Shown here piece after piece: positions 35,046 through 52,741 of a stretch of DNA of 64,000 bases. This DNA comes from Heteronotia binoei. Its lineage: Eukaryota. How positions within the stretch are numbered: position 1 is the stretch's first letter; every line of letters begins with the position of its first letter. The notes under the pieces are model-generated. The model was given only the letters and a program-made list of their open reading frames with translations. It was not told the origin of the DNA and did not search any database. Made by a program: the position numbers and the translations under genes. The DNA lies in the NCBI RefSeq assembly GCF_032191835.1, contig NC_083237.1, forward strand, positions 23,498,001 to 23,562,000, read 5' to 3'.

Positions 35046-36231
35046 GGGAGGAGTTTCTCAACATGGATGACATGGAGCCCACCAGCATCTTTCCTGGGGC
35101 CTGCCAAATGTTTTTAGAAAGAGGGTGGGGTTAGGTGGGCCTTTAGCCCAGCAGGGCTTCTGATTGGTCACTGAAGATTTTATTGGCTTTGCAGATTTTG
35201 AAAGATGTTTTGGCAGCAGCTGCCACTACAGCTCAAGGATCTGTGACTGGAGGGAAGCTGTGGCAGCCATTTTATGGCTGGCTCCACCTCCTCTTGGCAG
35301 CCATTTTGTGGCTGCGCCAACCATACTGTGTCAGAATTCCAAAGGTGCCTGCAGCTCGGAAATGTTGGGGACCTCTCATTTAAGGTACCGTGGGACACTT
35401 GTTTAATTTTGTTGGAGTTCTGTGTTTAGAGCTCTGTCATGGCTTTTTTAAAAAAACCAACAACCAAGCAGGAACCAAATTTGAATAAAGAAAGTGAATG
35501 TTTAACCACACTGTTTTCTAGAGCTGAAACAGCTTGAGGGAACTGCTGCTTTCTCTGTTGAGCCATGCACTGGGTTGGATCCCATCATCCTTTTTGCTCA
35601 ATTGCCTGACCCACATGCCTTTTGTCCGTGCAGGTCCCATGATCTACTGCAAGGGCTGCCAGGCCAAGTGAGGGAGGCTTCCCGTAGGCACCCCATGGCA
35701 GGAGGGCTTGCCACATAGCACTTTCATGTCATTTCTGAGGGAAACCTGGAAGTGACATTGGGTAGCTCTAGGAATCAACAGAGAATGGGAGCTCGGGAAG
35801 CAGGACGTAGGAAGAGTACATGGTTTTACGTATGCTATGACATCACTTCCGGGGAAAACTCTGGAGTAGATGGGCATGACGTTGGATCTGTCCATGCCAT
35901 TCTTACGTTGCGGGTTTTCTAAGCGTGCAGCATGGCTTGCTTATTGCAGTCACCCAAGACCCTGGCTCTGCAGTCGACTCTTGCAGCACACACCTGACCA
36001 CTTGTGCTCTGGAATGGAAAAAATTCTTTAGTGGGGGCTCGCAAGTGGGTCAGCTCTGAGAACTGTAAAGACAGCTTCCCTTGAGAAAGCAGTTGTTTCA
36101 GGCTGTCATGGTAACTTGCTGGCCGTGGGAACCCTATTTTGTGTGTGTGTGTATACCAATCTTTTGGTGTGGAGGCTCAGCAAAACCCTCAGTCTTTCTC
36201 TCTCTCTCTCTCCTCTCCCTCCCCCACCCAG

Positions 36232-36470
36232 GTCCGAGCTGTGATTGGCCACACTTATATGCTAACTCAGGACGAGGAGCTGTGGGAAAAGGAGCTTCCT
36301 CCCCATGTAGAGGCCTTGCTGGGCTTGGGGAGGGACCCATCTGTGGATCGCTCCAGGGAAGCCTCTGAAGGGGGCAGTGGGGCACCCCGTGATCAGACCC
36401 GGGTGGTGACCTATCGTGTCCCTCACAATGCAGCAGTGCAAGTGTATGACTACAAGGAGCGTAAATCCAG
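36232..36470 (+). CDS. MVP: MVP coding exon 9
   Basis: [23 protein letters not shown]...[16 protein letters not shown]. Confidence 0.95.
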
Positions 36471-37150
36471 GTGAGAGGACTGGCAAGACCATGGATGGGA
36501 GGGTTGCCAACTTTCAGGTGGCACCTGGAGATTTCCTGCTATTACAGTGGATCTCTAGATGACCAAGATCAGTTCCTCTACATAAAATGGCTGCTTTGGG
36601 GAGTGGACTCTAAGGCATTGTACCATGCTGACCTCCCTCCCCTCCCCAAACCCCACCTTCCTCAGGCTCCACCCCAAACCTATTTCCCCAACCTAGAGCT
36701 GGCAACCCTAGTGAATGGGTTTCCTTGACTGTGTTGAGGCAGCAGATCAGAGGGTGGGGCCCAGGTGGGGAGAGCCTAGGAAATACCTGGCCAGAGGAGC
36801 GGAATTTGCAGGAGGTGAGGCAGAGGGGGATTGTGACATCCAGTTACAGGGGAATCACTGTCCAATGGTGCTTCATTCAGTTTTGCAGACTTTCATGATT
36901 CTTGTAATGAAACCCCAAATTTGCAATGGGATATAGTCCTATGAACTTTCTTGCTTCACAGTACTTACCTATGAGAGTGTGTAAGGATCGGTTTCTGTGT
37001 AAACTGCAATTTGTATGAATTCTGGATTTGTAATATTTTGAAATAATCATGCATGTTGACAATTGGTTAGTGGTTTATTGAGTTTGGTAGAGGCTGGTAT
37101 TCACAGAACTGTGTGTTTTCCTACTTGTTGGCAACCCTAGGTCTGAAGTG

Positions 37151-37424
37151 GAGAGCCAGTTTGGAGTAGTGGTAAAGTGCACGGACTCTCGTTTGGGAGA
37201 ACCTGGTTTGATTCCCCACTCCTCCACCTGCAGCTACTGGAATGGCATTGGGTTAGCCATAGCTCTTTTAGGAGTTGTCCTTGAAAGGGCAGCTGCTGTG
37301 AGAGCTCTCTCAGCCCCACCCCTTCACAGGGTGTCTGTTGTTGGGGGAGAAGATATAGGAGATTGCAAGCCGCTCAGAGTCTCTGGTTCAGAGAGAAGGA
37401 TAGGGTATAAATCTGCAGTCTTCT
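37151..37424 (+). mobile_element. tRNA-headed SINE copy
   Basis: Same consensus as 26033-26302. Confidence 0.8.
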
Positions 37425-39456
37425 GCCGCTGCCACCTCAGGACTCATTGTCTCCTGGTGCTGGGTGTGAAGAGCAGGCCAAAGAGGGGATAGAGTCTGAA
37501 AGGAGGGGCAGGGAAAGGCAATACATTGAAGGAAAGATTTCCTTGAAATAAGAAGCACCAGCCCTTCCGGCTGCCTGGAATTTATGGCCTGCAGTTGGCA
37601 GGAAACCTTTCCTATCGGTCTCAGATCCCTGGAGAAGCTGCTGGTGGTGGTTACTCAGCGTCAGCATTTAGGAAAATGTACACTCATGCTCCAAAGAGAA
37701 GAGCTGACACCGAAGGCAGCTCATATGACTAAGTCGTGCTCAAATTGGTGCCCTGTTTCACTGCGGGAAGAAGCCAGTTATGGAGGCCTCGTGTGAGGCC
37801 AGTGTTTTGTGTAGGCTTTTGAAGGGTTTTTTCCAGCTTCCAAAACATTATTTTCCAGCTTCCAAACCATGGTGTAATTGCACACTCAATGATGATCTAG
37901 TTAAAACAAGCCTCTACAAGCTTCTGAACAGAACTGATTTTCAGAAAGTGGCTGAGTGAGAATCCAATTTCCCTGCTTCTGGGACTCCAGGAGGGAGGCA
38001 ACCATATGCCACCATTTCCAGGAACAGGGTTACCAGGTCCTAGAAATGTCTGGAGACTTTGAGGGGTGGAGCCAGTAGACTTTGGGGGTGGAGCCAAGAG
38101 CAAGGGTGTGACAAGCATAATTGAACTCCCAAGGGAGTTCTGGCCATCACATTTAAGGGGATCGCATGCCTTTTAAATGCTTTCTCTCCATCTGGAAATA
38201 ATGGATGGGGCACCTTCTTTTGGGGTTCATAGAATTGAACCCCTTGGTCCGATCTTTTTGAAACTTGGGGGGTGTTTTAAGGAGAGGCACCAGATGCTAT
38301 GCTGAAAATCTGGTGCCTCTACCTCAAGCAACAGCCTCCCCAGAGTCCCAAATACCCATAGATCAATTTTCCATTATACCCTATGGGAATCAGACTCCAT
38401 AGGGAATAATGGAGTGTCCAGCAGACATTTCCCTACCCCCCACCCCGCTTTCTGATGACACAGAAGTGGGGGGAGGACCTCCAAACTGGGAGAACCCCTG
38501 CCCCCAACTGGGAATTGGCAGCCCTCCTGGGGAGAGAGTTCTGATGCTCTGGGGTGGTGGGTGGTGGTTGAGAGACCCCAAACTGACCAGAGATGATGGA
38601 TGCTGGTTAGTGAGAACTGCTGTATGAATTATCTTGACAATGTTGCACTTTTATGTTGAGTCTCTCTTGGAAGAAGTGATCAACGAAACAAGAGATTAGT
38701 CGATTCCTTTTATGGGACTAGGGACTACTACCATAATTGTCCCTTGACGGAATGCTTTAAAATGACAAACCTTTGAATGAACGTTCTGAAAGAACTATGG
38801 GAGTTTTTATCCCTTTACTCAGCATTCCTTGTGGATTTATAAAAGCAGGAAATGTTTAGTGAAGGTTTCTGCTCTTTATTGTGGGCTGTAATTGTATTGT
38901 TAGATTGGAATACATCTTATGAGATGCTTTGACATATATTTGAAAAATCATTATATAATTCTATACAGCCTGCATAGTACTTTTCATTATTTGGGTTTAT
39001 GATACCTATTGGGAGGGTTTTTTTTCCAGGGGAACATGGCAGAACAGAGTTCTGGAACCTCTTGGTGGAAAAATATTTAAAGTTCATGAGGGGTACCCAT
39101 GTGTTTCTCCTTCATTTCCTTCACTTCTGGTACCTCTTTTTCCAGAAAAAACTCTTGGTATTGTGTAGCACAGCCTCCAGGTGGGCCCTGGGCTTCTATC
39201 TACAAAGATCAGTTCCCCTGCTTCAGAGGGCAAACTCTATGATACATTATAGATTTTTAGGTGAAATCCCTCCTCAAGTCCACCCCTCTAAGGCAATGTG
39301 TCCAAATTTCCAGGAATTCCCTAGGCTGGAGTTGGCAACCCTAATTATGAAACCTGTAACAGGAGCTTCATGGGACAATCTTAAGTGCTGGGGAGGTTCA
39401 GCAGGTGTGTGTGGGGGGATCTCCAGCCTAAGAGTCAGTGCCTCTCTTCTTTTCAG

Positions 39457-39654
39457 GGTGGTTTTTGGACCAGAATTGGTGCTTCTGGCCCCAGATGAGC
39501 AGTTCACAGTTCTGAGTCTGTCCGGAGGGCGGCCTAAGCGGCCCCATGCCCGCCGTGCCATCTGCCTCCTCCTGGGGCCTGACTTCTGCACTGACATCGT
39601 CACCATTGAGACAGCTGACCATGCCCGCCTTCAGCTCCAGCTGGCCTACAACTG
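39457..39654 (+). CDS. MVP: MVP coding exon 10
   Basis: VVFGPELV...[20 protein letters not shown]. Confidence 0.96.
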
Positions 39655-39845
39655 GTGAGTGTCTGGAGGTTAGAGACCACAACTGGGCGTTGGGGGGGGA
39701 ATAAGAGGGGGGACTGCAGTGGGGTAGGGTGTAGTGGCAATCTGTGCAGAAAGGTGGAGAATCTCTTGTCAAAGAATGACATCATAGTTAATGTATGCAA
39801 ATCAAGCAGATTTATGCACTCTTGAATACTCTGCATGCCTCGTTC

Positions 39846-40080
39846 TGCCAGCATGGTGTAGTGGTTAAGAGCAGTAGGCTCTAGTCTGGAGAGCTGGGTT
39901 TGATTCCCCCCTGCCCGCCTCCATGTGACGCCTGCTGGGTGACCTTGGAGGCAAGTCTCTGTTCTCTCAGAGCTCTCTCAGCCCCACCCACCTTACAAGG
40001 TGCCTATTGTGGGGAGAGGAAGGGAAAGGCAATTGCGAGCTGCTTGCTTTGAGGCTTCTCGGGGTGGAGAATTTTCTTCT
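39846..40080 (+). mobile_element. tRNA-headed SINE copy, shorter subfamily
   Basis: ggtgtagtggttaag...gggtttgattcccc head and the same 3' core. Confidence 0.75.
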
Positions 40081-40523
40081 TATACATTCCAACGTATTGA
40101 ATTTGTAATATATGGGGGTAACGAGGAGTTGGCGGGGAGGGGAGCAGGCATGGCAGAAGAAATTTGGCTCAGGGGAATCAAAGAAGTTGGAAATGGCAAC
40201 ATAAGCAAGGAAGATGAAGTGTTCTGCTGGATTCTATGGCCCCATCCCCAAATGACTGGAAGTCCTGCTCAAGAAAGATAGAGACTGGGGCATAAGCAGC
40301 CACAGAGTGGTCTTAACCAACGGGCAACAGGGGCAGCTGCCCTGAGCCCCTTCTCACAGCCCCACCCCATAAAGCAGGGGAGAGCAGCAGAAGCGCAGAC
40401 TCCTGCCACAGCTTGGACCTTCCCCGTTTGGGGCTCGGGCAGGTGGCTTCCAATGGAGGTGTGGCCATGATGCTCAGAGCCCCAGAATCACTGAGGCTGC
40501 CCCTTTGTGCAAGAGGTCCTAAG

Positions 40524-40717
40524 CAATACGCCCTCTAAGCTTTGCAGTCCTGCGAGCAAAAATTCTACTTTGTGAGCTACTGGCATTAAGGTTGTGAGCT
40601 ACTGCATAAATTAGTTTGCTCTGGGGCCATTTTTCCTGAGCTAAGACAAAAATGTGCGAGCTGGAGGGTAAAAACCTATGAGCTAGCTCACGCTAACTCA
40701 GCTTAGAGAGAACATTG
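40524..40717. mobile_element. Short MITE, second copy
   Basis: Shares TIRs and body with 33772-33942. Confidence 0.65.
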
Positions 40718-40788
40718 GTCTTGGGTAAGCACCAGTTCTGCTTGAGAGTGACCATGGGGGTCTTAAATTCTTCTCTTCCCCCCCCCAG

Positions 40789-40924
40789 GCATTTTGAGCT
40801 CCCTGCTGCTGCTGAGGCCTCCCGCCTCTTTAGTGTTCCAGATTTCGTAGGTGATACTTGTAAGACGTTGGCCTCCCGCATCCGGGGGGCTGTGGCTGCT
40901 GTCACATTTGATGACTTCCATAAA
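40789..40924 (+). CDS. MVP: MVP coding exon 11 (shoulder domain)
   Basis: [45 protein letters not shown]. Confidence 0.95.
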
Positions 40925-41625
40925 GTGAGTTGCAAGTTCCGCTTTTCTCTCTGCCTCCTTCTCCTGCAGAATGTAGCTTGGCAACTCTCGCCTACCTTGG
41001 TCCTGGCCAGGTTGCACAGCTGGGAGTGGGCAGCAGTGTTGTGCCCCCCGCCAGGGGATACTACTGGAAGTTCTGCATCAGCTTGGCCTTGTAGGCAATT
41101 CCTCTGAGCTGAGGAACAGCCTTTATCACATGGGAGATGGATGGGTAAGTGGCAGGGTAGCCAAGTCTGGGTTGGGAAATTCCTGGAGATTTCATGCTGG
41201 AGCCTGGGGAGGGGCCTCAGCGGGGTATAATGCCCCACACTCCACCTTCAAAAGCAGCTATTTCCTCCAGAGGAACTGATTTCTGAAGTCTGGAGATCAG
41301 TTTTAATTCATCTGGAGTCTGGCACCCCTGAGAGGTGATATCTGTCTTCCTCAGCCTAGTGGGTCAGACCAGTGGCTCATGAAAGCTCATCCCCTGCCAC
41401 AAATTTTGTTAGTCTTTAAGGTGCTACTTTACTCTGCCCGGTGAATATTGTTAGGGGCTGGCCACGACACAACTTGTTAGAAGGGGAACTATTTTTCATT
41501 TTTTCCGGAAAATAGCATTAGTGGTGCTGGCCATCATTAAAGCCGCCATTAGCTTTGGCATGTTTGCGCCAATGAGCAGCGCCTGGAATCTGTGGCAGCC
41601 CACTGACTGTAACCAATGTCCCCAG

Positions 41626-41837
41626 AACTCCAACCGCCTCATCAGCGCGGCCGTGTTTGGCTTTGATGCCGAAGGGAAGCTGCGAGGCTCCCTGCGCTTT
41701 GCCCCCAATGGCCTCATCATTAGCAGCATCGACATCCAGAGCGTGGAGCCCGTGGACCAGAGGACCAGAGATGCCCTGCAGCGCAGCGTCCAGCTGGCCA
41801 TCGAGATTACCACCAACTCTCAGGAGGCTGCGGCTCG
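41626..41837 (+). CDS. MVP: MVP coding exon 12
   Basis: [12 protein letters not shown]...[32 protein letters not shown]. Confidence 0.95.
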
Positions 41838-43102
41838 GTATGGATTTGTTCTGGGTGGGAAGAGGGGGCAAGTCCACAAGGACGGCACATAATCAGACGG
41901 TTCCTTGGACTTTTTTCCCTGGGCTCTAGTGGCCCTCTCTCCTCTTCTGTTGGCATTAGCATCCGTGTCCCTGATCTCTTCCCTCTGCTGCCTAATCCCA
42001 GAACATTGCACACAGCCAGTCTCCTTCTGGAATTATTGGGAATTGATCCTCCCCCTGCCCTGAGTTGTGCGTTCTTAGCACTTTAACTAGGAGGGAAAAA
42101 CTGGGCCAAATAAAATGTCAGCTCCGTGGCCTGCATTGATTGTGCAAGACAACTATACTTAAGTTTTTTTGGGGGGTGGGGGGGTGGGAATAATTTTTTC
42201 TCATCGGTTACAAGAACAGATATAAAAAGTCAAAGGAACTATGCAACCTCAGGGTCTTTGGGTTGAGTTATGGGGGAACATCTCTAACTGGCCTTCTTGA
42301 TATTTTAACAGGGCTTTTTTTTGTTGTTTAAAAAAAAAAAAGCCCAGCAGGAGCTCAGCAGGGCTCCGGGAAGCCCCATCGCTGCCTTTCCGGCTCTGCC
42401 TTCTTTCTTTCCTTTTTTTGAGCCGGAGTGCTGGCCAAGCCAGCTGGGGCAGCACTCCAGTGTGCTCCAGCTCAAAAAAAAGCCCTGCACTTTAGTTTCT
42501 GAAAAGCAGCATGAAGGCCTGGGTTGGAGAACACTTGATCTGTTCTGCAGCATACCACTTTCCCTGATAGAAATTGCTTTCCTGCCCCTAAGCTGCTGCT
42601 GTTTATTTAGTTCCTTTGTAGCCCACCAGCAATAGGGGAGACAAGACAGGAACAACAAAGGTACCCATGTAGTGCATCCCCTCCCAAGGCAGCTCGATTT
42701 CTGTCAAGAAAATGGCAAGGCAGGGTTTAAGAGTACTGCAGCTGTATCCAAATCCTTTCTTTCCTCCTGCAGTATGGAGGCTTTCCAGCACTGAAGGGCT
42801 GAGCTGTCTTATGTTTTGACCTTCAGTTGTCCCTCTCCCTCTCCCCCCCTCCCCGTCTGGCTTCCAAGTCTCTTGGCCCCATTAAAGTATTGCTTTCCAA
42901 ACTTCCAGCACTGCTCGGAGTCTGCTCCTATTGATTTTCTCTTCTCTGACTTCCCAAACTCTGAGATTGCAAGCGCCACCCCCCAAAAAAACCATCCAGC
43001 CCCATCTCTCTCCTGAGGGCCACCCTCTAGTGATCAGACATGGAGGAATCTCTTTCAGCTTCCATCCTCCAATTTTGGATCCCCTCTTCTCTTGTGTCCC
43101 AG

Positions 43103-43219
43103 GCACGAAGCCGAGCGACTGGAGCAAGAAGCGCGGGGACGCTTGGAGCGGCAGAAGATCCTTGACCAGGCTGAGGCAGAACGGGCCCGGAAGGAGCTTC
43201 TGGAGCTGGAAGCTTTGAG
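43103..43219 (+). CDS. MVP: MVP coding exon 13 (cap helix)
   Basis: [38 protein letters not shown]. Confidence 0.96.
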
Positions 43220-43304
43220 GTGGGGAGGGATGGAAGCTGGTGGGGCAGGTGGGGTCCACTCGGCACCAGGCAGCATCCGCCCTCGTTCTCTCTCCTCCCT
43301 GCAG

Positions 43305-43431
43305 CACGGCGGTCGAGAGCACCGGGGCAGCCAAGGCTGAGGCCCAGTCCCGAGCAGAGGCAGCCCGGATTGAGGGCGAAGGTGCGGTCCAGCAGGCCAG
43401 GCTCAAGGCAGAGGCCACGGCCATTGAGACG
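43305..43431 (+). CDS. MVP: MVP coding exon 14
   Basis: [26 protein letters not shown]...AIET. Confidence 0.96.
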
Positions 43432-44364
43432 GTGAGTCTGACTGTCCCTTCTCGTGTCCTTTGCTGGTCTTGCCTCCTGCGCAGCTCTTTTTTTCTGATT
43501 TACTTTTATACTCCCATTTTTCTCCCCAATGGGGGACCCAAAGCAGCTGATAGCAGTCCCCTCTTCTCCATTTTACCCACAACAGCCCTGTGAGGTAGGT
43601 TAGGCTACAAGTGTGTGGTTGGCTCACGGTCATCCAGAAAGCTTCTATGGCAGTGGGAATTCAAACCTGGGTCTCTCAACTCATAGCCTGGCACTCTTAA
43701 CCACCACACCCTGCTAGCTCTGAGCCTGTGCCTGCTTCTGCCATCTCAGGCTGAGACAAAAAGACTAGGAAACAGGGTGAAGGAAATCAACATCCTCTTT
43801 AAAAAAAATTTGTGGTAATTGCTGTCCTTTCCCCAAATCACTAAGTCTTGTTTATTCTCCTCCTTTCTGTTTTGCAGTCCTCAAGTATCTTTTAATTGTG
43901 CCTCTGTTTCAATAGCAGTTTTGTCAAGGGCACAAACTTCGCTGGATCTGATCCTTAATCCATCCAGTCCAATATCCTCAGTTCTCACAGTGGCCAACCA
44001 GATGCTCTGAAAGGCTCACAAGTAGGGCCCAGAGGCCAAAGCCTCTGTTATCCTCTCCCCCTAAACTGGTTTTCAGGACTGTGCTGCTTTTGACAATGCA
44101 GGTTCCATTTAGCCATCGTCATGGATACAAGGCCTATCAATAGCCATCCTTTAGGAATTTGTCTGATTCCTTTTTCAAGTGGCCATCACCCCCTGCTGCA
44201 GCAGGGACTTCTGCAAGTTAATTTCCCTTTCAACTGTGCCTTTTTCCTACTAGAGACTATTGTGAGTCCTAGTTTATAAGCAAAGTTCTTGCATGTTCCT
44301 CTGTTTGGAGCTATGTGGCCTTCAGGTGGTGTAAATGCAATTGCTGTACATGTTATTGTTAAAA

Positions 44365-44773
44365 CAGGGGACTCAAATGTGTGGCCTGGGAGCTGGATCA
44401 GGCCTCAGAGGGTTCTTATCAGGCCTGCGAATAAGTCTGGTTTCTTCTCCCTCTCTCTTGCTTCCTTCTATGTCACAGCTTGCTTTGTCAGGCTTGCTCA
44501 ATTGCACAGGAGCTACAGAGCAAAGTCCCTTTTCCTTCTTCTGGCTGTGGCTCTTCCCCCTCCTCATCCCCTGGGGAAGGAGGGAAAGAGCCAGAGCTTC
44601 CTTTGCTCAGTTCCCTCAATCACACGGGAGAGATGTGAAATTTTTAATTGTGTTTGTTGGTGTCCCTTATAAAGTTTATATCTCAGCTACTTTTATAACA
44701 GACATAGCCCGGCCTGACAAGGTCTCATTTATGTCAGATCCTGCCCCCATAACAAATGAGTTCGACTCCCCTG
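44365..44773. mobile_element. Second copy of the same hAT MITE family
   Basis: Shares internal sequence with 10018-10508 (ttgcacaggagctacagagcaaa; ggggaaggagggaaagagccagagcttcctttgc). Confidence 0.8.
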
Positions 44774-45030
44774 ACTTAAAAGACTCCTTGCCTTTCATTA
44801 GCTTTTGAAGACCCACGCCTTAGGTCAAGACTATCACACCAGCTTCAGTGCTGGGCACAGTGAACTCTTATAACATTCTGTGGGTCCCAGCAGCTTCCTC
44901 AGTCTTTGGGGCTGACGGGTACAGGAAGGCTCTTGCGGTCTTCTTCATGTAGTTCTGTGTTCTTGAATTGGATGGGCTTCCTAAAGTTTGATGCCAGTCA
45001 GTGTCTCCCATGATACATTTGAAAGTATTT

Positions 45031-45770
45031 TCATAGAATCATAGAGTTGGAAGGGACCTCCAGGGTCATCTAATCCAGCCCCCTACACAATACAGGAAAT
45101 TCACAAATACCTCTGCCTCCCACACACCCCCAGTGACCCCCGTTCCATGCCTTTTGATTTAATTTCAACCTGTTGGTTCTGGTCTGACCTTCCGGGGCAA
45201 CAGAAAACAATTCTGCACTATCCTCTATATGACAGCGCTTCAAGTACTTGAAGATGATAATCATATCACCTCTGAGTCGTCTCCTCTCGAGGCTAAACAT
45301 ACATCCTTCAACCTTTCGTCTTAGGACTTTGTCTCCAGACCCCTCACCATCTTCGTTGGCCTCCACTAGACGCATTCTAGCGTGTCTATATCTTTCTTAA
45401 ATTGTGGTGCCCAAAACTGAGCACAATACTCTAGAAGAGGTCTACCTAGAGCGGACTAAAGCAATACCATCACTTCACGTGATGTGGACACCATGCTTCT
45501 GTTGATACAGCCCAAAATCGCATTGGCCTTTTTAGCTACTGCATCACACTGTTGGCTCATGTTCAGAATATGGTCTACCCTGACTTCTAGATCCTTTTCA
45601 CACATACCACTGCCAAGACAAGTCTCTCCTATCCTATAATTTTGCATTTGATTTTTTTCCTACTTGATGGAGAACTTTACAATTATCCCTGTTAAAATTA
45701 ATTTTATTTTAGCCCAGTTTTCCAGTCTGTCAAGATTGTCCTGTACCTGACTTTGCCTTCTACTGTATTT
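45031..45770 (-). mobile_element. CR1 LINE 3' fragment
   Basis: catagaatcatagagttggaagggacc tail; ORFs FSLERRRLRGDMI..FKYLK and EKDLEV.VD..LNMSQQCDAVAKKANAILGCI. Confidence 0.9.
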
Positions 45771-46014
45771 GTAATTTTGACCCCTTGAACATGTGAAGTT
45801 GCCTTATACCAAACCAGACTATCGGCCCATCAAGTTTAGTACGGTCTACTCAGGTCGGCAGCAGTCTCAGGGGAAGGTCTTTCCCATCACCCACCACTTG
45901 ATCCTTTCCGATGGAGATGCCAGAGATTGGGCCCAGGGTGCTAGGCAGATGCTCCGCCACTCAGCTACAGCTCCCCACCTCCCTCACTCCCTCTTCTCCC
46001 ATCAATCCTCACAG

Positions 46015-46203
46015 GCATCAGAACTACAACGCCTGGCTAAAGCTCGGGAACAGGAGCTTGGCTTCTCCAAGGCTCAGACTGACCTGGATGTGGCCCGTGC
46101 TGAAGCTTTGGCTGCTGTCGAAGTGAAGAAATTTGAGGCTGTGATCCAGGCAATGGGGGCCGGCACCATCCGTGACATTGCTGTGGCTGGGCCAGAGATG
46201 CAG
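46015..46203 (+). CDS. MVP: MVP coding exon 15
   Basis: ASELQRLAKAREQEL...IRDIAVAGPEMQ. Confidence 0.95.
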
Positions 46204-46380
46204 GTGAGAAGGCTGGGGGAAGGTGGAGGTGGTTCTTTTGCAAAGGGCCATAGCAGAGGGGTGAAGGGATGAGCGGGCCAAGCAGATCTGATGGCTTCTA
46301 GTCCTGGGGAGCGTGAAATGTTGTTGAGGGATGGGCTTTTTTGAGACAGTGACGGGATTCTCAATTTCTCTTTCTCGCAG

Positions 46381-46503
46381 GCAAAACTGCTCCAGGGCTT
46401 GGGTATCCAGTCCACACTCATCACGGATGGTTCCTCCCCGATTAACCTTTTCACAGCTGCCGGAGGACTGTTGGGGATCCTTCCCAAGCCTTCCACAGCC
46501 TGA
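46381..46503 (+). CDS. MVP: MVP last coding exon ([40 protein letters not shown])
   Basis: The 16 exons sum to 2532 nt = 843 aa plus stop, with no frameshift. Confidence 0.95.
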
Positions 46504-46708
46504 CAGGTGCCGGAAATACATACCTCTCCACCAGGCTTCGGAGTGCCTTAGGGATTGCTGGGGCTGGGGCGAGTCTTCCTTCCCAGTTGGGCTGCCCTTG
46601 AATGTGCCTTCACTTGAGCCTTATATTCTGTTTTCTTCTGTAATATGAAAATCATGTATTTTTTTCTCCTCGTGTTGCTTGCTTAAAGAAAGCCAAAGAA
46701 TAGTTTAC

Positions 46709-46714
46709 AATAAA
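46709..46714 (+). terminator. MVP: MVP polyadenylation signal AATAAA
   Basis: About 205 nt after the stop, followed by a U-rich tract. Confidence 0.8.
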
Positions 46715-46861
46715 GTCATCTGCAATTTCTTGCCTCGTCTTTTTTACAGGTGGTTGCTTTTTTTTCTGGGAATGTTTTAAAGGAGGGAGAAAAACTGGGA
46801 TGAAGGGGGAGGTGCGTATATTGTGAGGTCATAGAATGTTGGCAAGGCCAAGAAAGCAGCA

Positions 46862-46955
46862 ATGCTGAGTCAAGGGGAACTTCTGCTGCTCCGTCTCCTG
46901 TCCTTTTTTACAAGTTTCACTAGGGTGGCCCTGAATGACCCCCGAGAAGTGACAG
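46862..46955 (+). CDS. C16orf92: Putative FIMP/C16orf92 exon 1, signal-peptide-like (MLSQGELLLLRLLSFFTSFTRVALNDPREVT)
   Basis: Hydrophobic N-terminus; strong CAG|gtgagc donor; phase 1 matches the next exon; assigned by phase and character, not by sequence identity. Confidence 0.6.
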
Positions 46956-47440
46956 GTGAGCACAGGTCCTCCTGAACTACTCCCTCCAAGTACATGTGGC
47001 CCATCACTCAACTCCACCTGCACCCTGAATAGCAAAACTCAACCACTTGCAGGAGACCTCATTTGGCACTAACAGATTGTTTGGTTACAACTGAACTTCA
47101 TCCTGGGCGTGTTCGGGTATGGACTGTTTAAACTGTCATGGCTTCCAACTAAGGAATCCTGGAAACTGTATTTTTTAAGAGGGAAAGAGGGGACTAGAGA
47201 TTTGTGACTGGGAGTTGACAGCATCCTCACAAAACTGTTTATGGGGTCTGTGAAAACCCTTGGAAAGGGCAAAAGTCTTTTGAAATTTAGTTTTAGACAA
47301 GTGGGAGACCCATAAAGACTTGTGGGAGCTGTTCTACTTTCCCCTCCCATGAAAACCTCACAGCCTTGCCCTTTCCTTTCCACCTACTAGCCAAACCACC
47401 TTAATCTGCCCCCCCCCCCAATCTTCACCTGTCCTTCCCT

Positions 47441-47720
47441 TGCCAGTTTGGTGTAGTGGTTAAGTGTGTGGACTCTTATCTGGGAGAACCGGGTTTGATT
47501 CCCCACTCCTCCACCTGCACCTACTGGAATGGCCTTGGGTTAGCCATAACTCTGGCAGAAGTTGTCCTTGAAAGGGCAGCTGCTGTGAGAGCCCTCTCAG
47601 CCCCACCTACCTCACAGGATGTCTGTTGTGGGGGAGGAAGGTAAAGGAGATTGTGAGCCACTCAGACTCTGAAATTCGGAGTGGAGGGCGGGATATAAAT
47701 CCAATATCATTATCATCCCT
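47441..47720 (+). mobile_element. tRNA-headed SINE copy
   Basis: Same consensus. Confidence 0.8.
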
Positions 47721-49194
47721 TCTTCTGGCAGCCTCTTAACTGGGAAAACTATGGCCCAGTGCATGTGGGACATCTGAAGGGAATGAGGGAGTACACATCA
47801 TTTCCCCCATATCCCCATCTCTGCACTCTTTTTTCCCTTCTCCTGGCAGCCCCCATATTCTCACAGTTCTCTGCTTCCTTCTTTCATTTCCCCCCACCAC
47901 CAACCCACCTACCTTTTATCTGCCCCCCCCCCCCCCAGTCTTTGGCTATATTGCTATTTATGCCCTGTCTTTATCTACAGTGGGGACCCAAAGCACCTTA
48001 CATCATTCTCCTCCCTTCCGTTTTATCCTCACTGCAACCCTGTGTTTAGTCCGAGAACCTGTGATGGGCTCAATGCCACCAAGTTTGCTTCCATGGCAGA
48101 GTGGGGATTTGAAACCCACTGGTCTGAAACTCTTAATTACTGGACCACCCTGGCTGTCATGAGGTGGCTGCTCTTAAACAGAATCAATCTACCAGGCCCT
48201 GGGTGAGTAATGCAAATGCCCAGCAATATTGCAGTTGCACTGAGGACAGTCATTTCTTAAAGCTACAGGTATGGCCTGTATGGGGGGGGGGGAGGTGATA
48301 GTATCCATTTTTTCCCTTAGATTTCAGGGTGCTCCTCCCCAAATCTAGGGCTTTTTCAGGTTAGCAGAAAGATCTGTTTTGTCTAGCCATGGCTCCAATC
48401 TCTGGATTTATATATCCAAAGATGTGGCCATGTTGAGAATTAGATCTTGAGTTTGAATGATAAAGGCACTGGGGGACGGGGAGTCTCTTGCCTTCATGGC
48501 ATCCTATAGATTCCCAGTACATTATACCTCATCCAGAACTTATAACACCTACATTCATCTTGCAGTTTGTGCTGCACAGAGAAACATCTTCCCATGTCCT
48601 TCCCTTTCACCCAGTCCAATGACTGTGGGATGTCTGCTCAACAGCACAGGGGAGCGGTGGGCATGCCGTGCTTTCCTATGGAAGGCCCTGTGTCGCTGCC
48701 AAGCCACTGCAATGGAACTTCCAGAGGGTGGGTTTCCCCAGGTTTTTGTCCAGTCCCCACAGCAACCATTCCCTTTGTCCCACTGGGGGGTAGGGGCTTT
48801 GCCCAGGGTTCTTTGGAACTAGTAAACTGCATACTGACATGTTAACTACTGATCTTTTTTTAAAAAAAAAACACTCCCCAAGCTGCTTCAGTGGCACAGT
48901 GGAGACAATGGGGAAAAGAGAAAATCTCGACTATCCCCAATATACATGCTACCCTGCCTACCTTTATCACCATCTTTCCTGAAACGTTGCAGCAGAGCAA
49001 GTTTGGGAGGAAAAACTTTCTCCAGTAGAACACGGCACTTGAGCCTGAAAGATTCTACAAACCCTAATGATGTTACCAGCCGTGAAAACCTGAAATCTTT
49101 GATAAGTTTGGGAAGTATTGCAGGAAGCAACCAGAATGGTGTAGAGAAGAATCTCAATCTTTATGTAGGGAGGGGAGGATAGAGAAAAATGCCT

Positions 49195-50165
49195 CCTATG
49201 CTGTAAACATAGTTTATTTCACTAAGGCTTTTGATAAGGTTCCACATTCTATTCTTGTTGGCAAGTTGGTAAAATGTGGCTTGGATCGTATTACTGTTAG
49301 GTGGATCTGTAACTGGTTGACAGATTGCACCCAGTGTGTTTGTTAATGGTTCTTCATCCTCTTGGAAAGATTAGTGACAAGGAATCTGTCTTGGGATGGG
49401 ACCTGTTTTGTCTAGTATCTTTATAAATGATTTGGATGAAAGAATAGAGGGAGGGGTTATCAGATTTGCAGATAATACCAAATTGGGAGGGACAGCAAAC
49501 ACAGTAGAAGACAGGCATCATTATACAAGATGATCTTGACAGGCTGGAAAACTGAGCTAAAACAAATGAATTTTAAACTAGGATAAACATAACGTTCTGC
49601 ATTTAGGTAGGAAAAATCAAATGCATCATTATAGGATGGGGGAGAATTGTCTTGGTAGTAGGTACATGTGAAAAGGATCTAGGGGTCTTAGTGGACCATA
49701 CACTGAACATGAGTCAGCAGTGTGATGCAGCTGGTAACTAAAAAGGCCAATGTGATTTTGGGCTGTATCAAACAGTAGTGTCCAGATGCAAAGTGATGGT
49801 ACCACTTTGCTCTGGTTAGATCTTACCTAGAGTATTGTGTTCAGTTTTGGGCACTACAATTTAAGGATATAGACAAGCTGGAACATGTCCAGAAAAGGGC
49901 AACGAAGATGGTGAGGGGTTTGGAGACCAAGTCCTACGAGGAAAGGCTGAAGGAGCTAAGTATGTTTAGCCTGGAGGGCAAATGTCTGAGAGCTGATATG
50001 ATCACCATCTTCAAGTACTTGAAGGGCTGTCATATAGAGGATGGTGCAGAGTTGTCTTCTGTGGCCCCAGAACCAGTGGGCTGAAATTAAATCAGAAGTT
50101 TTCAACCAAATGTTAGGAAGGGCTTTCTGTTAGAGTGGTTCTTCAGTGCAACAGGCTTCTCTCAG
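49195..50165 (+). mobile_element. Degraded CR1 LINE ORF2 3' fragment in FIMP intron 1
   Basis: aaggcttttgataaggttcc, gatgatcttgacaggctgga, aggatctaggggtcttagtggacc and atgtttagcctggag hallmarks. Confidence 0.88.
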
Positions 50166-50198
50166 TGAGGAAGGCTTTCTGGTTTCTTGGGTCTGCAG

Positions 50199-50342
50199 CG
50201 CCTGAAGAACCCAAACAGGCCAAGGAAATAAAGCCCTCTCCATCACACCCATCGCTTTGGTTCGATTATCCGGACTCCGATAAAGAGAAGATCCTTGCTG
50301 CTTACAAGCTGATTGGAGAAGAGCCTGTGTTCATCACCCCAA
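50199..50342 (+). CDS. C16orf92: FIMP/C16orf92 exon 2 (PEEPKQAKEIKPSPSHPSLWFDYPDSDKEKILAAYKLIGEEPVFITP)
   Basis: FDYPDSD...IGE.P motif matches recalled human FFDYPDSDQARLLAVAQFIGEKPIVFI; ctgcag acceptor and gtgaga donor. Confidence 0.85.
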
Positions 50343-50484
50343 GTGAGATGTGGTCCCTCCCACAGGAAACTCGGCTGCCCTGCTCCTCTTTCTGAAGGAG
50401 GAACTTTGGGGGTGGGGGAGCCAACCTGTGGTCAAGGAGCTCCCACAAGAAATCTGCCCCCCCCCCCACAATTGTCCTTTGCAG

Positions 50485-50572
50485 GCACCTTCCCTCAGCA
50501 GTTGCGGTTTATCCTGGTTGGGTCCATCCTGCTCATCCTTCTGTTCTTCCTCTACCAGATCTGCACTAAAGT
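50485..50572 (+). CDS. C16orf92: FIMP/C16orf92 exon 3, transmembrane helix (TFPQQLRFILVGSILLILLFFLYQICTK)
   Basis: tttgcag acceptor, gtacgt donor; resembles recalled human HILVGLLVVAFFFLLFQFCTH. Confidence 0.82.
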
Positions 50573-50706
50573 GTACGTGTGTCGTGGTGGCCCTTCCTTG
50601 CATGTTGTGCTGCAAGCATATTCCCCTCCCCCAGCTGCCTTTGGAGGTGATGGTTCCCTTCCACACTCCCCCCCCCCATGCACACTGATCTCCCTTCTTT
50701 TTTTAG

Positions 50707-50731
50707 GATTGGCAAAAAGGGGTCTGCCTAA
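50707..50731 (+). CDS. C16orf92: FIMP/C16orf92 exon 4 (IGKKGSA*)
   Basis: ttttag acceptor; short basic tail like recalled human NFQKGA*; four exons total 351 nt = 116 aa plus stop. Confidence 0.75.
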
Positions 50732-50802
50732 AAAGACGTCGGAAGATCAGAGTTTTGTTCCGTGGTCAGCCTTTTGCCTCCTCCTGGTAATCGCACCTGT
50801 AC

Positions 50803-50808
50803 AATAAA
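50803..50808 (+). terminator. C16orf92: FIMP/C16orf92 polyadenylation signal AATAAA
   Basis: About 70 nt after the stop; convergent with the TLCD3B 3' end. Confidence 0.7.
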
Positions 50809-52372
50809 ACACTAATGGAGTGCGAGAACTGCGATCAGAGGAAAAGTCAGGACACTTGGGATTGTGAGAGACAGTTATGGAGAAAGCTTGCAAGCTTTAG
50901 CAGCTGGTAGACCCTGATTCAGAATTTGGGTGTGTGTGTTGCTCACAGGGCTACTTCCAAGTTTTGAGGGGCCCTGGACCGAGAGTTCCCAAAGAGCTCC
51001 TCTCCCCTCTTCCAGATGCCCCCCCAAAGATGTCATTCTTCCCTCTAGCCCACCTCTATGTCCTTCCCCTGCCCACTTGCGACTCTCCCCCACTGCCTGC
51101 GCTCACAGCTGCTTGCAGCCTTCCCGAGTGGTGCTGGGCAGGGCGTGCAGCTGGCAGCTGGGTGGAGCTTTGGCAAATCAGTGAGTGGGGAGGAGTCAGC
51201 AGCAGTAGGCACTGCCAGAAGTCCTGGCACCAGATGCCCCAATTTTTTGGGTGGGGGGAGAGTTGCACGGAAAGCTTGGCAGGGGAAAGGGCAAGAAAGA
51301 CGCATCACGTGGCCCTCGGCTGGCATTAGATAAAGGCTCCTTTAATACTTTGCAGATTTCAGGTTATAAATACAGCCCGCCCATCCCCTATTTACAGCTG
51401 GATCCCCTGCCCGGTGGAGTGGGGATTTCTAGGAAGGAAAAGTGAAAGGGGGGGGGGGGCGTGTTGTGCGCTGAACTGAGGAGAAGGTGGCAAGGGGGCA
51501 GGTGCTCCCCTACTTGGTTATTGCTCGTTGGGGGGCTGACGGTGGTTAGGAAGCACCCCTCTGGTCACCTTCCCATTTCAAGGGTGTGCAATTGGGGATG
51601 TTTCTGGCGGGTGGCACCCCGGTAATACTGCAGATTACTTGCTATTCAAGCAGCACCCAAAAAAAGCCTTGGGTTTTTATTTTTGTCTTGATTGGGCATC
51701 CTATGAAAATTCCTAAGCACCTTGAATAATACTGGGGAATACTGTTGTGTCTATGGTTAATAGCAGAGAATGTCCCCTTGGTCTATCTGCCCCCACTGTA
51801 TGACTAGCATGACCCCATGCCGATGACTGGAGTTCTCTCTTCTCGCCTCCACTCAGATCATCCTGGGGCTGGCCTCGTGGGTATGATGCAAACAACTGGG
51901 AATACTTCAAATAAAACGTTTTGGGTTTTTCGTTCATTTGTTTGGCTTGGCAGAACCTCCCCACCCCCCAGAATCCCTTTGTTTTGTTTCACAGCCCCAA
52001 AGAAACTTCAACTGTACCCTGGTTCTTGGCCTTTTAAAAACCCTCCTGGCCTGAAAGTCTCCCTGCAAGAGAGATCCCATGTGTTCTCCTTTGGCTTGGG
52101 ACCCTAGCCTCACCACTCACCCCCAAGGGACTTCTAAATTGCGTATAATGAGGGTTGCCTTTGGCAACAGAATTCTGTAAGAAACCAGGGGACTTCCGGC
52201 CTGCACTGCTGTGTCCTCGGAATACTTCGCTCCAGCCCCCTTTCCAAATCCCATTTGGCCTAGGAGCCCACTCCCCCAAATACTCCAGTCCCTCCCACAT
52301 CCCCAATAAATAAATAAGTTAGAGGAAAACATGTTCTGTCCGTCTCTGGCTGAGGTGAGGAGGGGGCAGTGA

Positions 52373-52741
<369 letters not shown>

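Follow-up and report, generated by a model that had tools for sequence, protein, structure and literature searches.

An intact FIMP (C16orf92) orthologue between MVP and a convergent TLC-domain gene in the lizard Heteronotia binoei

Gene structure and flanking genes

The window analysed here is a 64,000-nucleotide stretch of Heteronotia binoei contig NC_083237.1 (positions 23,498,001 to 23,562,000, forward strand). Between the end of the major vault protein gene, MVP, and a convergent TLC-domain gene it contains four exons which almost certainly constitute an intact squamate orthologue of FIMP (C16orf92), encoding a type-I membrane protein of 116 aa. The features of the locus, in window coordinates, are:

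46363-46714, + strand: MVP (major vault protein), last coding exon plus 3' UTR; AATAAA at 46709-46714
46862-46955, + strand: FIMP exon 1 (94 nt), ATG at 46862, donor GTGAGC, followed by a phase-1 intron
46956-50198, + strand: intron 1 (3.2 kb, GT..AG), mostly interspersed repeats
47442-47710: tRNA-headed SINE in intron 1, from sequence reading and pile-up of RNA-library contigs
48955-50136: high-copy repeats in intron 1, from pile-up of RNA-library contigs
50199-50342, + strand: FIMP exon 2 (144 nt), acceptor ..tctgcAG, donor GTGAGA
50485-50572, + strand: FIMP exon 3 (88 nt), acceptor ..tttgcAG, donor GTACGT, encoding the juxtamembrane segment and transmembrane helix
50707-50731, + strand: coding part of FIMP exon 4 (25 nt), acceptor tttttttAG, encoding a short basic cytoplasmic tail, with TAA at 50729-50731
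50803-50808, + strand: AATAAA poly(A) signal, 72 nt past the stop, identified by sequence reading only
52374-52693, - strand: last coding exon of the convergent, downstream TLC-domain gene, TLCD3B by position

The spliced coding sequence is uninterrupted over 351 nt (116 codons and a stop), with compatible exon phases and canonical GT..AG signals at all six splice sites. A sequence-only reading of the window had proposed this same model, with four phase-compatible exons, a 116-aa product and an AATAAA belonging to FIMP itself, and every coordinate proved right; for annotation, that reading correctly recovered a small gene of four exons that is invisible to ORF-based tracks. Exon 1 supplies 31 codons plus one nucleotide, comprising the start codon and a signal-like N-terminus, while exon 2 encodes the variable ectodomain, the WFDY motif (50258-50269), a short helix and IGEEP. 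The exon 1 peptide alone has no match in Pfam, and its assignment draws on alignment to exon 1 of the Podarcis, Hemicordylus and Pantherophis FIMPs, the 94-nt length and the phase being those of Podarcis. Thousands of RNA-library contigs at 90-99% stack on the repeat segments of intron 1 only, and ARAGORN detected no intact tRNA in this intron.

The predicted topology is type I, with a single C-terminal transmembrane helix and a short cytoplasmic tail. Hydropathy peaks at 2.63 (Kyte-Doolittle, 19-residue window) over residues 88-106 (50505-50561), followed by a basic tail of 10 residues, in agreement with the single-pass membrane protein of the sequence-only reading. The exon 3 motif LVGSI.LILLFFLYQI is common to squamate orthologues, and the exon 4 tail is alignable with squamate tails, those of Podarcis and Anolis ending in a ..FKKSNAG-type tail. 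At the opposite end, residues 6-25 form a hydrophobic stretch (mean 1.34) that can be aligned with the exon 1 leaders of orthologues and may represent a cleaved signal peptide. The earlier description of this N-terminus as signal-like is no more than moderately convincing, in that the leader is hydrophobic but its core (residues 7-16) is broken by Arg11 and a basic n-region is absent.

Both neighbours were identified by comparison with other FIMP loci. The last exon of MVP, whose AATAAA sits about 150 nt ahead of the FIMP ATG, is 91% identical to that of Podarcis (tblastn); a spliced RNA contig joins MVP 46014-46199 to 46377-46627, another contig extends to 46664, and the Vault_3 and shoulder domains of MVP lie at 38999-39655. 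Downstream, the TLC-domain exon shares 87% identity (106 aa) with the gene adjoining FIMP in Podarcis and 68% with that adjoining FIMP in the seal. The upstream exon of this gene has a weak TLC match in Pfam, and the atlas matches are all TLC. The convergence with TLCD3B noted in the sequence-only reading corresponds to a minus-strand TLC-domain gene, for which that name is given by position.

Family membership and orthology

Exon 2 alone matches the Pfam family FIMP (PF17672) with 27.5 bits (E=3.5e-6, profile positions 66-91), above the curated cutoff of 25 bits, and exon 3 follows in order with 13.8 bits at profile positions 102-122. The whole peptide matches a profile of annotated FIMPs with 149.6 bits (E=2e-48) over residues 1-114. 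This profile was built without the window peptide and its members were found without using exons 1, 3 and 4, so the fit of these three exons is independent evidence. The members came from an exhaustive phmmer search with exon 2, which returned reptile FIMPs with 61-83% identity in the matched region (named FIMP or C16orf92 homolog by RefSeq in squamates and turtles), and from a profile search which added Anolis, Pogona, Hemicordylus, caecilians, the coelacanth and a seal, all with PF17672. The stop-free segment around exon 2 (50117-50392, region 29-75) gave no candidate in a word-indexed protein search, which reflects a limit of sensitivity rather than absence, since the exhaustive search later found matches. 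A 47-aa phmmer query with exon 2 had no match with E up to 10 among solved structures; either the set searched does not include the 2026 TMEM95-FIMP structure, or that structure is too diverged for this query.

Gene order and intron positions extend the comparison beyond sequence. MVP, FIMP and the convergent TLC gene occur in this order in the window and in the three sauropsid loci compared for the upstream neighbour (Podarcis, Pantherophis and the turtle Malaclemys), and in the seal a convergent TLC gene also lies downstream of FIMP. The window and Podarcis have coding lengths of 94/144/88/25 and 94/144/88/28 for the four exons, and Pantherophis has 91/147/85/25; intron positions and phases are equal in all three, and the first two are also equal in turtle and seal. 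Gene structure, family membership and orthology by synteny and intron positions are demonstrated by these data, and the FIMP call of the sequence-only reading is upheld by the Pfam score, the profile match, the intron phases and the neighbours.

The annotated squamate FIMPs (Podarcis lilfordi CAI5790915.1, Hemicordylus capensis isoform X1, Pantherophis guttatus XP_034275541.1, and the 'C16orf92 homolog' of Pogona and Anolis) are 47-65% identical to the window peptide and resemble it in four-exon structure, phases and neighbours. They share its signal-like exon 1, the WFDYPD..KIL..Y..IGE.P core, the transmembrane motif and the short basic tail. The window peptide differs from them in carrying Arg instead of Gln within its signal core, and Ala at position 66 against V, I or T in the rest. 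In a phylogenetic tree the window peptide falls within the squamate clade (support 90/94) with a terminal branch of 0.5, the longest among the squamates; as its sequence is none of the annotated squamate FIMPs, it represents a lineage not yet present among them.

Identity is lower outside squamates. Homologues from turtles (Malaclemys, Chrysemys, Lepidochelys, Caretta), caecilians (Geotrypetes, Rhinatrema) and the coelacanth (Latimeria LOC106705789) are 29-45% identical and share the WFDY..IGE.P core. The turtle and caecilian homologues also share the transmembrane helix, which the Latimeria model lacks, its differing C-terminus probably being a mis-annotation; turtles retain the gene order of the window, and their models end just past the helix. 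Mammalian FIMP (mouse 4930451I11Rik, human C16orf92, grey seal P0031, of which the seal was used here) is about 32% identical, with PF17672, type-I topology, FDY and I-G-E-x-P alike, the exon 1/2 and 2/3 boundaries placed as in the window, and a convergent TLC-domain gene downstream. The seal gene differs in that its stop lies directly past the transmembrane exon, with no coding exon 4, and in that a divergent C2-domain gene takes the place of MVP upstream.

Expression, selection and alternative gene models

A run search restricted to exons 2-4 listed no matching RNA runs. A wider search returned three RNA runs at 8-9% word share, which we rejected as FIMP expression because the shared words come from the intron 1 repeats and MVP. 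Contigs from these three runs, which carry MVP of this organism, have nothing on any FIMP exon; since the tissue of the runs is not given, they neither support nor refute testis-restricted expression.

The motif-to-transmembrane core is under purifying selection. NG86 estimates of dN/dS are 0.36 overall against Podarcis, 0.09-0.19 in the 58-codon core and 0.4-0.8 in the N-terminal half, the Podarcis comparison alone being quantitatively reliable as dS is near saturation against snake and turtle.

The best-surviving alternative, which we consider unlikely, is that the gene is real but mainly yields a product other than that of the four-exon model, most likely through read-through of the exon 3 donor, with a longer tail in place of the basic one. 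The exon 3 frame is open across intron 3 and exon 4 to 50804, and the annotation of Varanus, Podarcis muralis and Zootoca includes read-through models; such models are however a frequent artefact of retained-intron reads, and the short basic exon 4 tail is conserved in lacertids, a cordylid, iguanians and snakes. Two isoforms are made in mouse. An alternative first exon is less likely than read-through: isoforms initiated in intron 1 are annotated in Sceloporus, Zootoca and Laticauda, but exon 1 is alignable across squamates, and in the window there is no in-frame ATG upstream of exon 2 before the preceding stop.

It is much less probable that the locus is an unexpressed or decaying relic derived from FIMP, with its frame open by chance. 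The lack of RNA support in runs of unstated tissue, the long terminal branch and the Arg inside the signal-peptide core would all fit a relic; against this, four exons are open, the six splice sites are canonical, a poly(A) signal is present, every family-invariant position is kept and dN/dS in the core is 0.09-0.15. Finally, the idea that open segments and splice-like dinucleotides have come together by chance, with no gene behind them, has in its favour only the shortness of the exons and the commonness of GT/AG dinucleotides, and it is already refuted by the Pfam match of exon 2, the end-to-end profile match and the conserved intron phases and neighbours.

Distribution of FIMP and the TMEM95-binding motif

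The intact four-exon gene in the window is an ordinary FIMP orthologue, and FIMP in reptiles is already known. RefSeq has entries under FIMP or "C16orf92 homolog" for Anolis, Pogona, Podarcis, Zootoca, Sceloporus, Hemicordylus, snakes, turtles and caecilians; among reptiles, the labels 'fertilization-influencing membrane protein' and 'C16orf92 homolog' cover at least 10 squamate and at least 4 turtle species. The novelty implied by the sequence-only reading does not stand, as its own proviso about existing reptile annotation had allowed. The distribution of the family has been surveyed by PSI-BLAST in a 2022 paper (PMC9482655) and also in a 2026 preprint, and with two such studies and wide naming in databases the biological gain from this locus is small. 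Part of the fertilisation literature nevertheless remains mammal-only, FIMP being said to lack clear non-mammalian homologues (PMC8488580), in line with the earlier remark that it is usually described as a mammalian factor, while the family and its TMEM95-docking motif are conserved across tetrapods. An origin at least as old as the amniote ancestor, as had been suggested, is supported, and the homologues annotated in caecilians and the coelacanth make it older still; given the one in the coelacanth, the family predates amniotes. Birds and crocodilians do not appear among the matches listed, which were drawn from at most 8000 candidates.

In a 2026 cryo-EM preprint, human FIMP docks onto TMEM95 through FFDY, with contacts at F68, F69, D70 and Y71 and at V82, F85 and I86; F68A, F69A or Y71A abolishes binding, and E88A, at the E of IGE.P, lies outside the interface and has minimal effect. 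Through the seal sequence as intermediate, where the offset is 22 at each of the ten residues that the preprint names, these contacts map to W52, F53, D54, Y55, A66, L69 and I70 of the window peptide. The [F/W]FDY loop and short helix element is present as a motif (W52-F53-D54-Y55, I70), with two helix contacts unlike human (V82 to A, F85 to L). Of the functional core proposed in the sequence-only reading, FDYPDSD/IGE.P, the FDY part coincides with the human TMEM95-binding motif, while the E of IGE.P, with the minimal effect of E88A, does not belong to it; the proposal is half right.

Mouse Fimp knockout males are severely subfertile because sperm-oocyte fusion fails, and expression is testis-specific; functional tests are limited to mouse and to human proteins. 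By homology, lizard FIMP would be made in spermatids and located at the acrosomal or equatorial membrane, where its ectodomain, made up of the WFDY loop and then a short amphipathic helix, might bind the conserved basic surface of TMEM95. The pair would then form as is required for membrane fusion between mouse sperm and egg, and testis expression and a fertilisation role would be expected by analogy with the mouse.

The first aromatic residue of the motif is W in the window and in every non-mammal seen, and F in seal and human; W-F-D-Y is found in the coelacanth, the caecilians, the turtles and all squamates. We lean, with modest confidence, towards the view that the TMEM95-binding element is ancestral to sarcopterygians with W-F-D-Y as its original motif, that mammals later changed the first aromatic residue to F, and that the complex works in reptile fertilisation. 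If so, statements that FIMP has no non-mammalian homologues would be contradicted, and lizards would offer a test bed for the TMEM95-FIMP fusion complex in non-mammalian amniotes. Given the conservation of FIMP and its docking motif across tetrapods, the complex described in 2026 is testable outside mammals. This picture of an ancestral W-F-D-Y does not originate from the window, which contributes one further lineage to it.

The FIMP gene model and its family

The four-exon model put forward by the sequence-only reading was reproduced exactly when its coordinates were read directly in the window and the segments were spliced by script:

46862-46955, +, FIMP exon 1 (94 nt)
50199-50342, +, FIMP exon 2 (144 nt)
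50485-50572, +, FIMP exon 3 (88 nt)
50707-50731, +, coding part of FIMP exon 4 (25 nt)

All introns begin with GT and end in AG after a pyrimidine tract, the exon phases fit, and the 351 nt coding sequence encodes 116 residues followed by TAA, with the WFDY codons at 50258-50269. The transmembrane helix and the gene's own poly(A) signal were also found as described, the former at hydrophobic residues 88–106 (Kyte-Doolittle mean 2.63), followed by a ten-residue basic tail, and the latter as AATAAA at 50803-50808, 72 nt past the stop. The N-terminus is indeed hydrophobic, but its core holds Arg11 and a basic n-region is absent, so that calling it signal-like is fair but unproven. The exon 3 frame is open across intron 3 and exon 4 (50573-50804), so that intron 3 retention would yield a tail of ~77 residues versus the 8-residue tail of exon 4; read-through models of this type are annotated for Varanus, Podarcis muralis and Zootoca.

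The exon 2 peptide alone (47 aa) matches the Pfam FIMP family PF17672 at 27.5 bits (E=3.5e-6, profile positions 66-91; curated cutoff 25 bits) and the exon 3 peptide (28 aa) scores 13.8 bits at positions 102-122, and the two are therefore in the right order. Exhaustive phmmer with exon 2 against 1.84 billion representatives gave 12 matches at E <= 0.001, nine of them short proteins (94-226 aa). Matches from Pantherophis guttatus, Crotalus tigris, Sceloporus undulatus, Podarcis muralis, Zootoca vivipara and four turtles are named 'fertilization-influencing membrane protein' or 'C16orf92 homolog' at source; those from Varanus komodoensis, Podarcis lilfordi and Laticauda carry no protein name, and the coelacanth match is LOC106705789. 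A profile search using an alignment of these matches added Podarcis raffonei, Pogona vitticeps, Hemicordylus capensis, Anolis carolinensis, Phrynocephalus, two caecilians and grey seal FIMP, every one with a precomputed PF17672 match.

Against an HMM of 19 of these homologues, from which the candidate was left out, the spliced protein scored 149.6 bits (E=2e-48) with residues 1 to 114 aligned; as only exon 2 had served as bait, the alignment of exons 1, 3 and 4 is independent support. Exon 1 aligns to the leaders of Podarcis, Hemicordylus and Pantherophis, and exon 4 to the short basic tails found in lacertids, iguanians and snakes. The candidate is 47-65% identical to the squamate proteins, 42-45% to those of turtles, 32% to seal FIMP and about 30% to the caecilian and coelacanth homologues, and a maximum likelihood tree places it within the squamate clade (support 90/94), with its position inside the clade unsettled and its terminal branch rather long. 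The FIMP identity claimed from sequence, for which a profile search had been proposed as a check, is thus borne out by significant scores both for exon 2 alone, above the PF17672 cutoff, and for the whole peptide, and the call of a squamate FIMP is correct. No protein in the databases is identical to the candidate, hence the copy of this species is unannotated there. The homologues from Latimeria (P0006) and the caecilians (P0029, P0030) have a WFDY..IGEKP core and a PF17672 match, and the family therefore predates amniotes, being older still than the amniote ancestor proposed as its minimum age. Mis-called last exons probably explain why the Latimeria model has no transmembrane helix.

Gene neighbourhood and previous records

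In the loci of Podarcis lilfordi, Pantherophis guttatus and Malaclemys terrapin, a same-strand gene of ~843 aa is followed by FIMP and a convergent TLC-domain gene, and the window has the same order. Pfam identifies the upstream neighbour as major vault protein (MVP) in both squamate loci; for the 844-aa Malaclemys terrapin product, which has no recorded Pfam hit, the assignment to MVP rests on size and position.

about 36226 to 46494, MVP exons, 85-94% identity to Podarcis exons
38999-39655, Vault_3 and shoulder domains of MVP
46709-46714, MVP AATAAA
52374-52693, -, last coding exon of the TLC-domain gene, 87% identity to Podarcis and 68% to the seal FIMP neighbour

FIMP exon lengths are 94/144/88/25 in the window, 94/144/88/28 in Podarcis and 91/147/85/25 in Pantherophis, and the first two intron positions are common to seal and window. 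In the seal a convergent TLC gene lies downstream, whereas upstream there is a divergent C2-domain gene (DOC2A by position) in place of the MVP of sauropsids. The stated convergence with TLCD3B 'as in human' therefore holds for the window and for a mammal, the seal rather than the human locus itself being the comparison.

Sauropsid FIMP lies in tandem directly 3' of MVP. The distance from MVP coding end to FIMP ATG is 175-370 nt in the fetched loci of other species (L001 9654-10001; L002 9632-10001; L003 9825-10001), and in the window the FIMP ATG follows the MVP AATAAA by only about 150 nt (46363-46955), which poses the question of room for a testis-specific promoter, or of a contribution from MVP read-through. 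One rattlesnake FIMP carries the name 'major vault protein-like'.

The implied novelty of a reptile FIMP does not stand, as orthologues are already widely annotated in reptiles, an outcome foreseen in the reading's own proviso. Its remark that FIMP is usually described as a mammalian factor matches a 2021 statement that FIMP is without clear non-mammalian homologues (PMC8488580); the 'reptile' BLAST behind that statement covered turtles alone (taxid 8459, Testudines), and squamates were therefore outside the search. PSI-BLAST over the tree of life gave a distribution like that of proteins of mammals and select birds, reptiles and amphibians (PMC9482655), and a similar survey in a 2026 preprint has TMEM95 appearing earlier than FIMP in vertebrates. 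The observation is thus confirmed and the gene call right, yet ordinary, and the window contributes one further squamate lineage to the known family.

Selection and the TMEM95-binding motif

Pairwise NG86 comparison of the candidate with Podarcis gives dN/dS 0.36 (dS 0.83). Over the core (58 codons, WFDY motif through the end of the transmembrane helix) the ratio is 0.15 against Podarcis, 0.09 against Pantherophis and 0.19 against turtle, the snake and turtle figures being rough because dS is near saturation; the comparison across reptiles that had been suggested thus finds the core under purifying selection. The N-terminal half has dN/dS 0.4-0.8, and the leader and proximal ectodomain are fast-evolving, as is usual for reproductive proteins.

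Mouse Fimp is testis-specific, with its transmembrane isoform at the equatorial segment, and knockout males are severely subfertile because their sperm fail to fuse with oocytes (PMC7196805), in agreement with the background given in the sequence-only reading. In human FIMP a loop (residues 62-75) and short helix (76-86) dock on a conserved basic surface of TMEM95, with V82, F85 and I86 as hydrophobic contacts; binding is lost with F68A, F69A and Y71A and is minimally affected by E88A and F93A (2026 preprint). Shifted by a constant 22 positions, all ten residues named there match seal FIMP, and no gap interrupts the alignment of candidate and seal across the contact stretch, so the human contacts can be mapped:

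human F68, candidate W52
human F69, candidate F53
human D70, candidate D54
human Y71, candidate Y55
human V82, candidate A66
human F85, candidate L69
human I86, candidate I70

Each motif residue is either unchanged or replaced by another aromatic, and the helix contacts are still hydrophobic. In lizards FIMP may bind TMEM95 and have a corresponding function. The proposed 'FDYPDSD / IGE.P' functional core is half explained: FDY is the TMEM95-binding motif and I70 of IGE.P a contact, but its invariant Glu corresponds to E88, outside the interface, and therefore TMEM95 binding as described in the preprint leaves the conservation of G-E-x-P unaccounted for. At the first aromatic position of the motif, seal and human have F and all non-mammals seen have W.

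RNA data and intron 1 repeats

A run search found three RNA runs, from libraries described as metatranscriptomic, with 8-9% word share for the whole FIMP gene, and listed none matching when limited to exons 2-4. Their contigs on 46000-51900 cover just two things, the last MVP exons and high-copy repeats in FIMP intron 1; none touches a FIMP exon in this interval, a result that is neutral on testis-restricted expression as the tissue of the runs is not given. The MVP exons are matched at about 100% identity, so that the organism is represented in these runs. The last MVP intron (177 nt, GT..AG) is confirmed by a spliced contig that runs from 46014-46199 straight into 46377-46627 with 0-2 mismatches; the same contig places the source organism, or a very close relative, in one of the RNA runs, X2.

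47442-47710, SINE of ~270 bp in FIMP intron 1, tRNA-like head with GGTTTGATTCC B-box-like element
48955-50136, further interspersed high-copy repeats in FIMP intron 1

Thousands of contigs from the three libraries, 90-99% identical, are stacked on these repeats, and the families are therefore plentiful among transcripts, or in carry-over DNA of those libraries.
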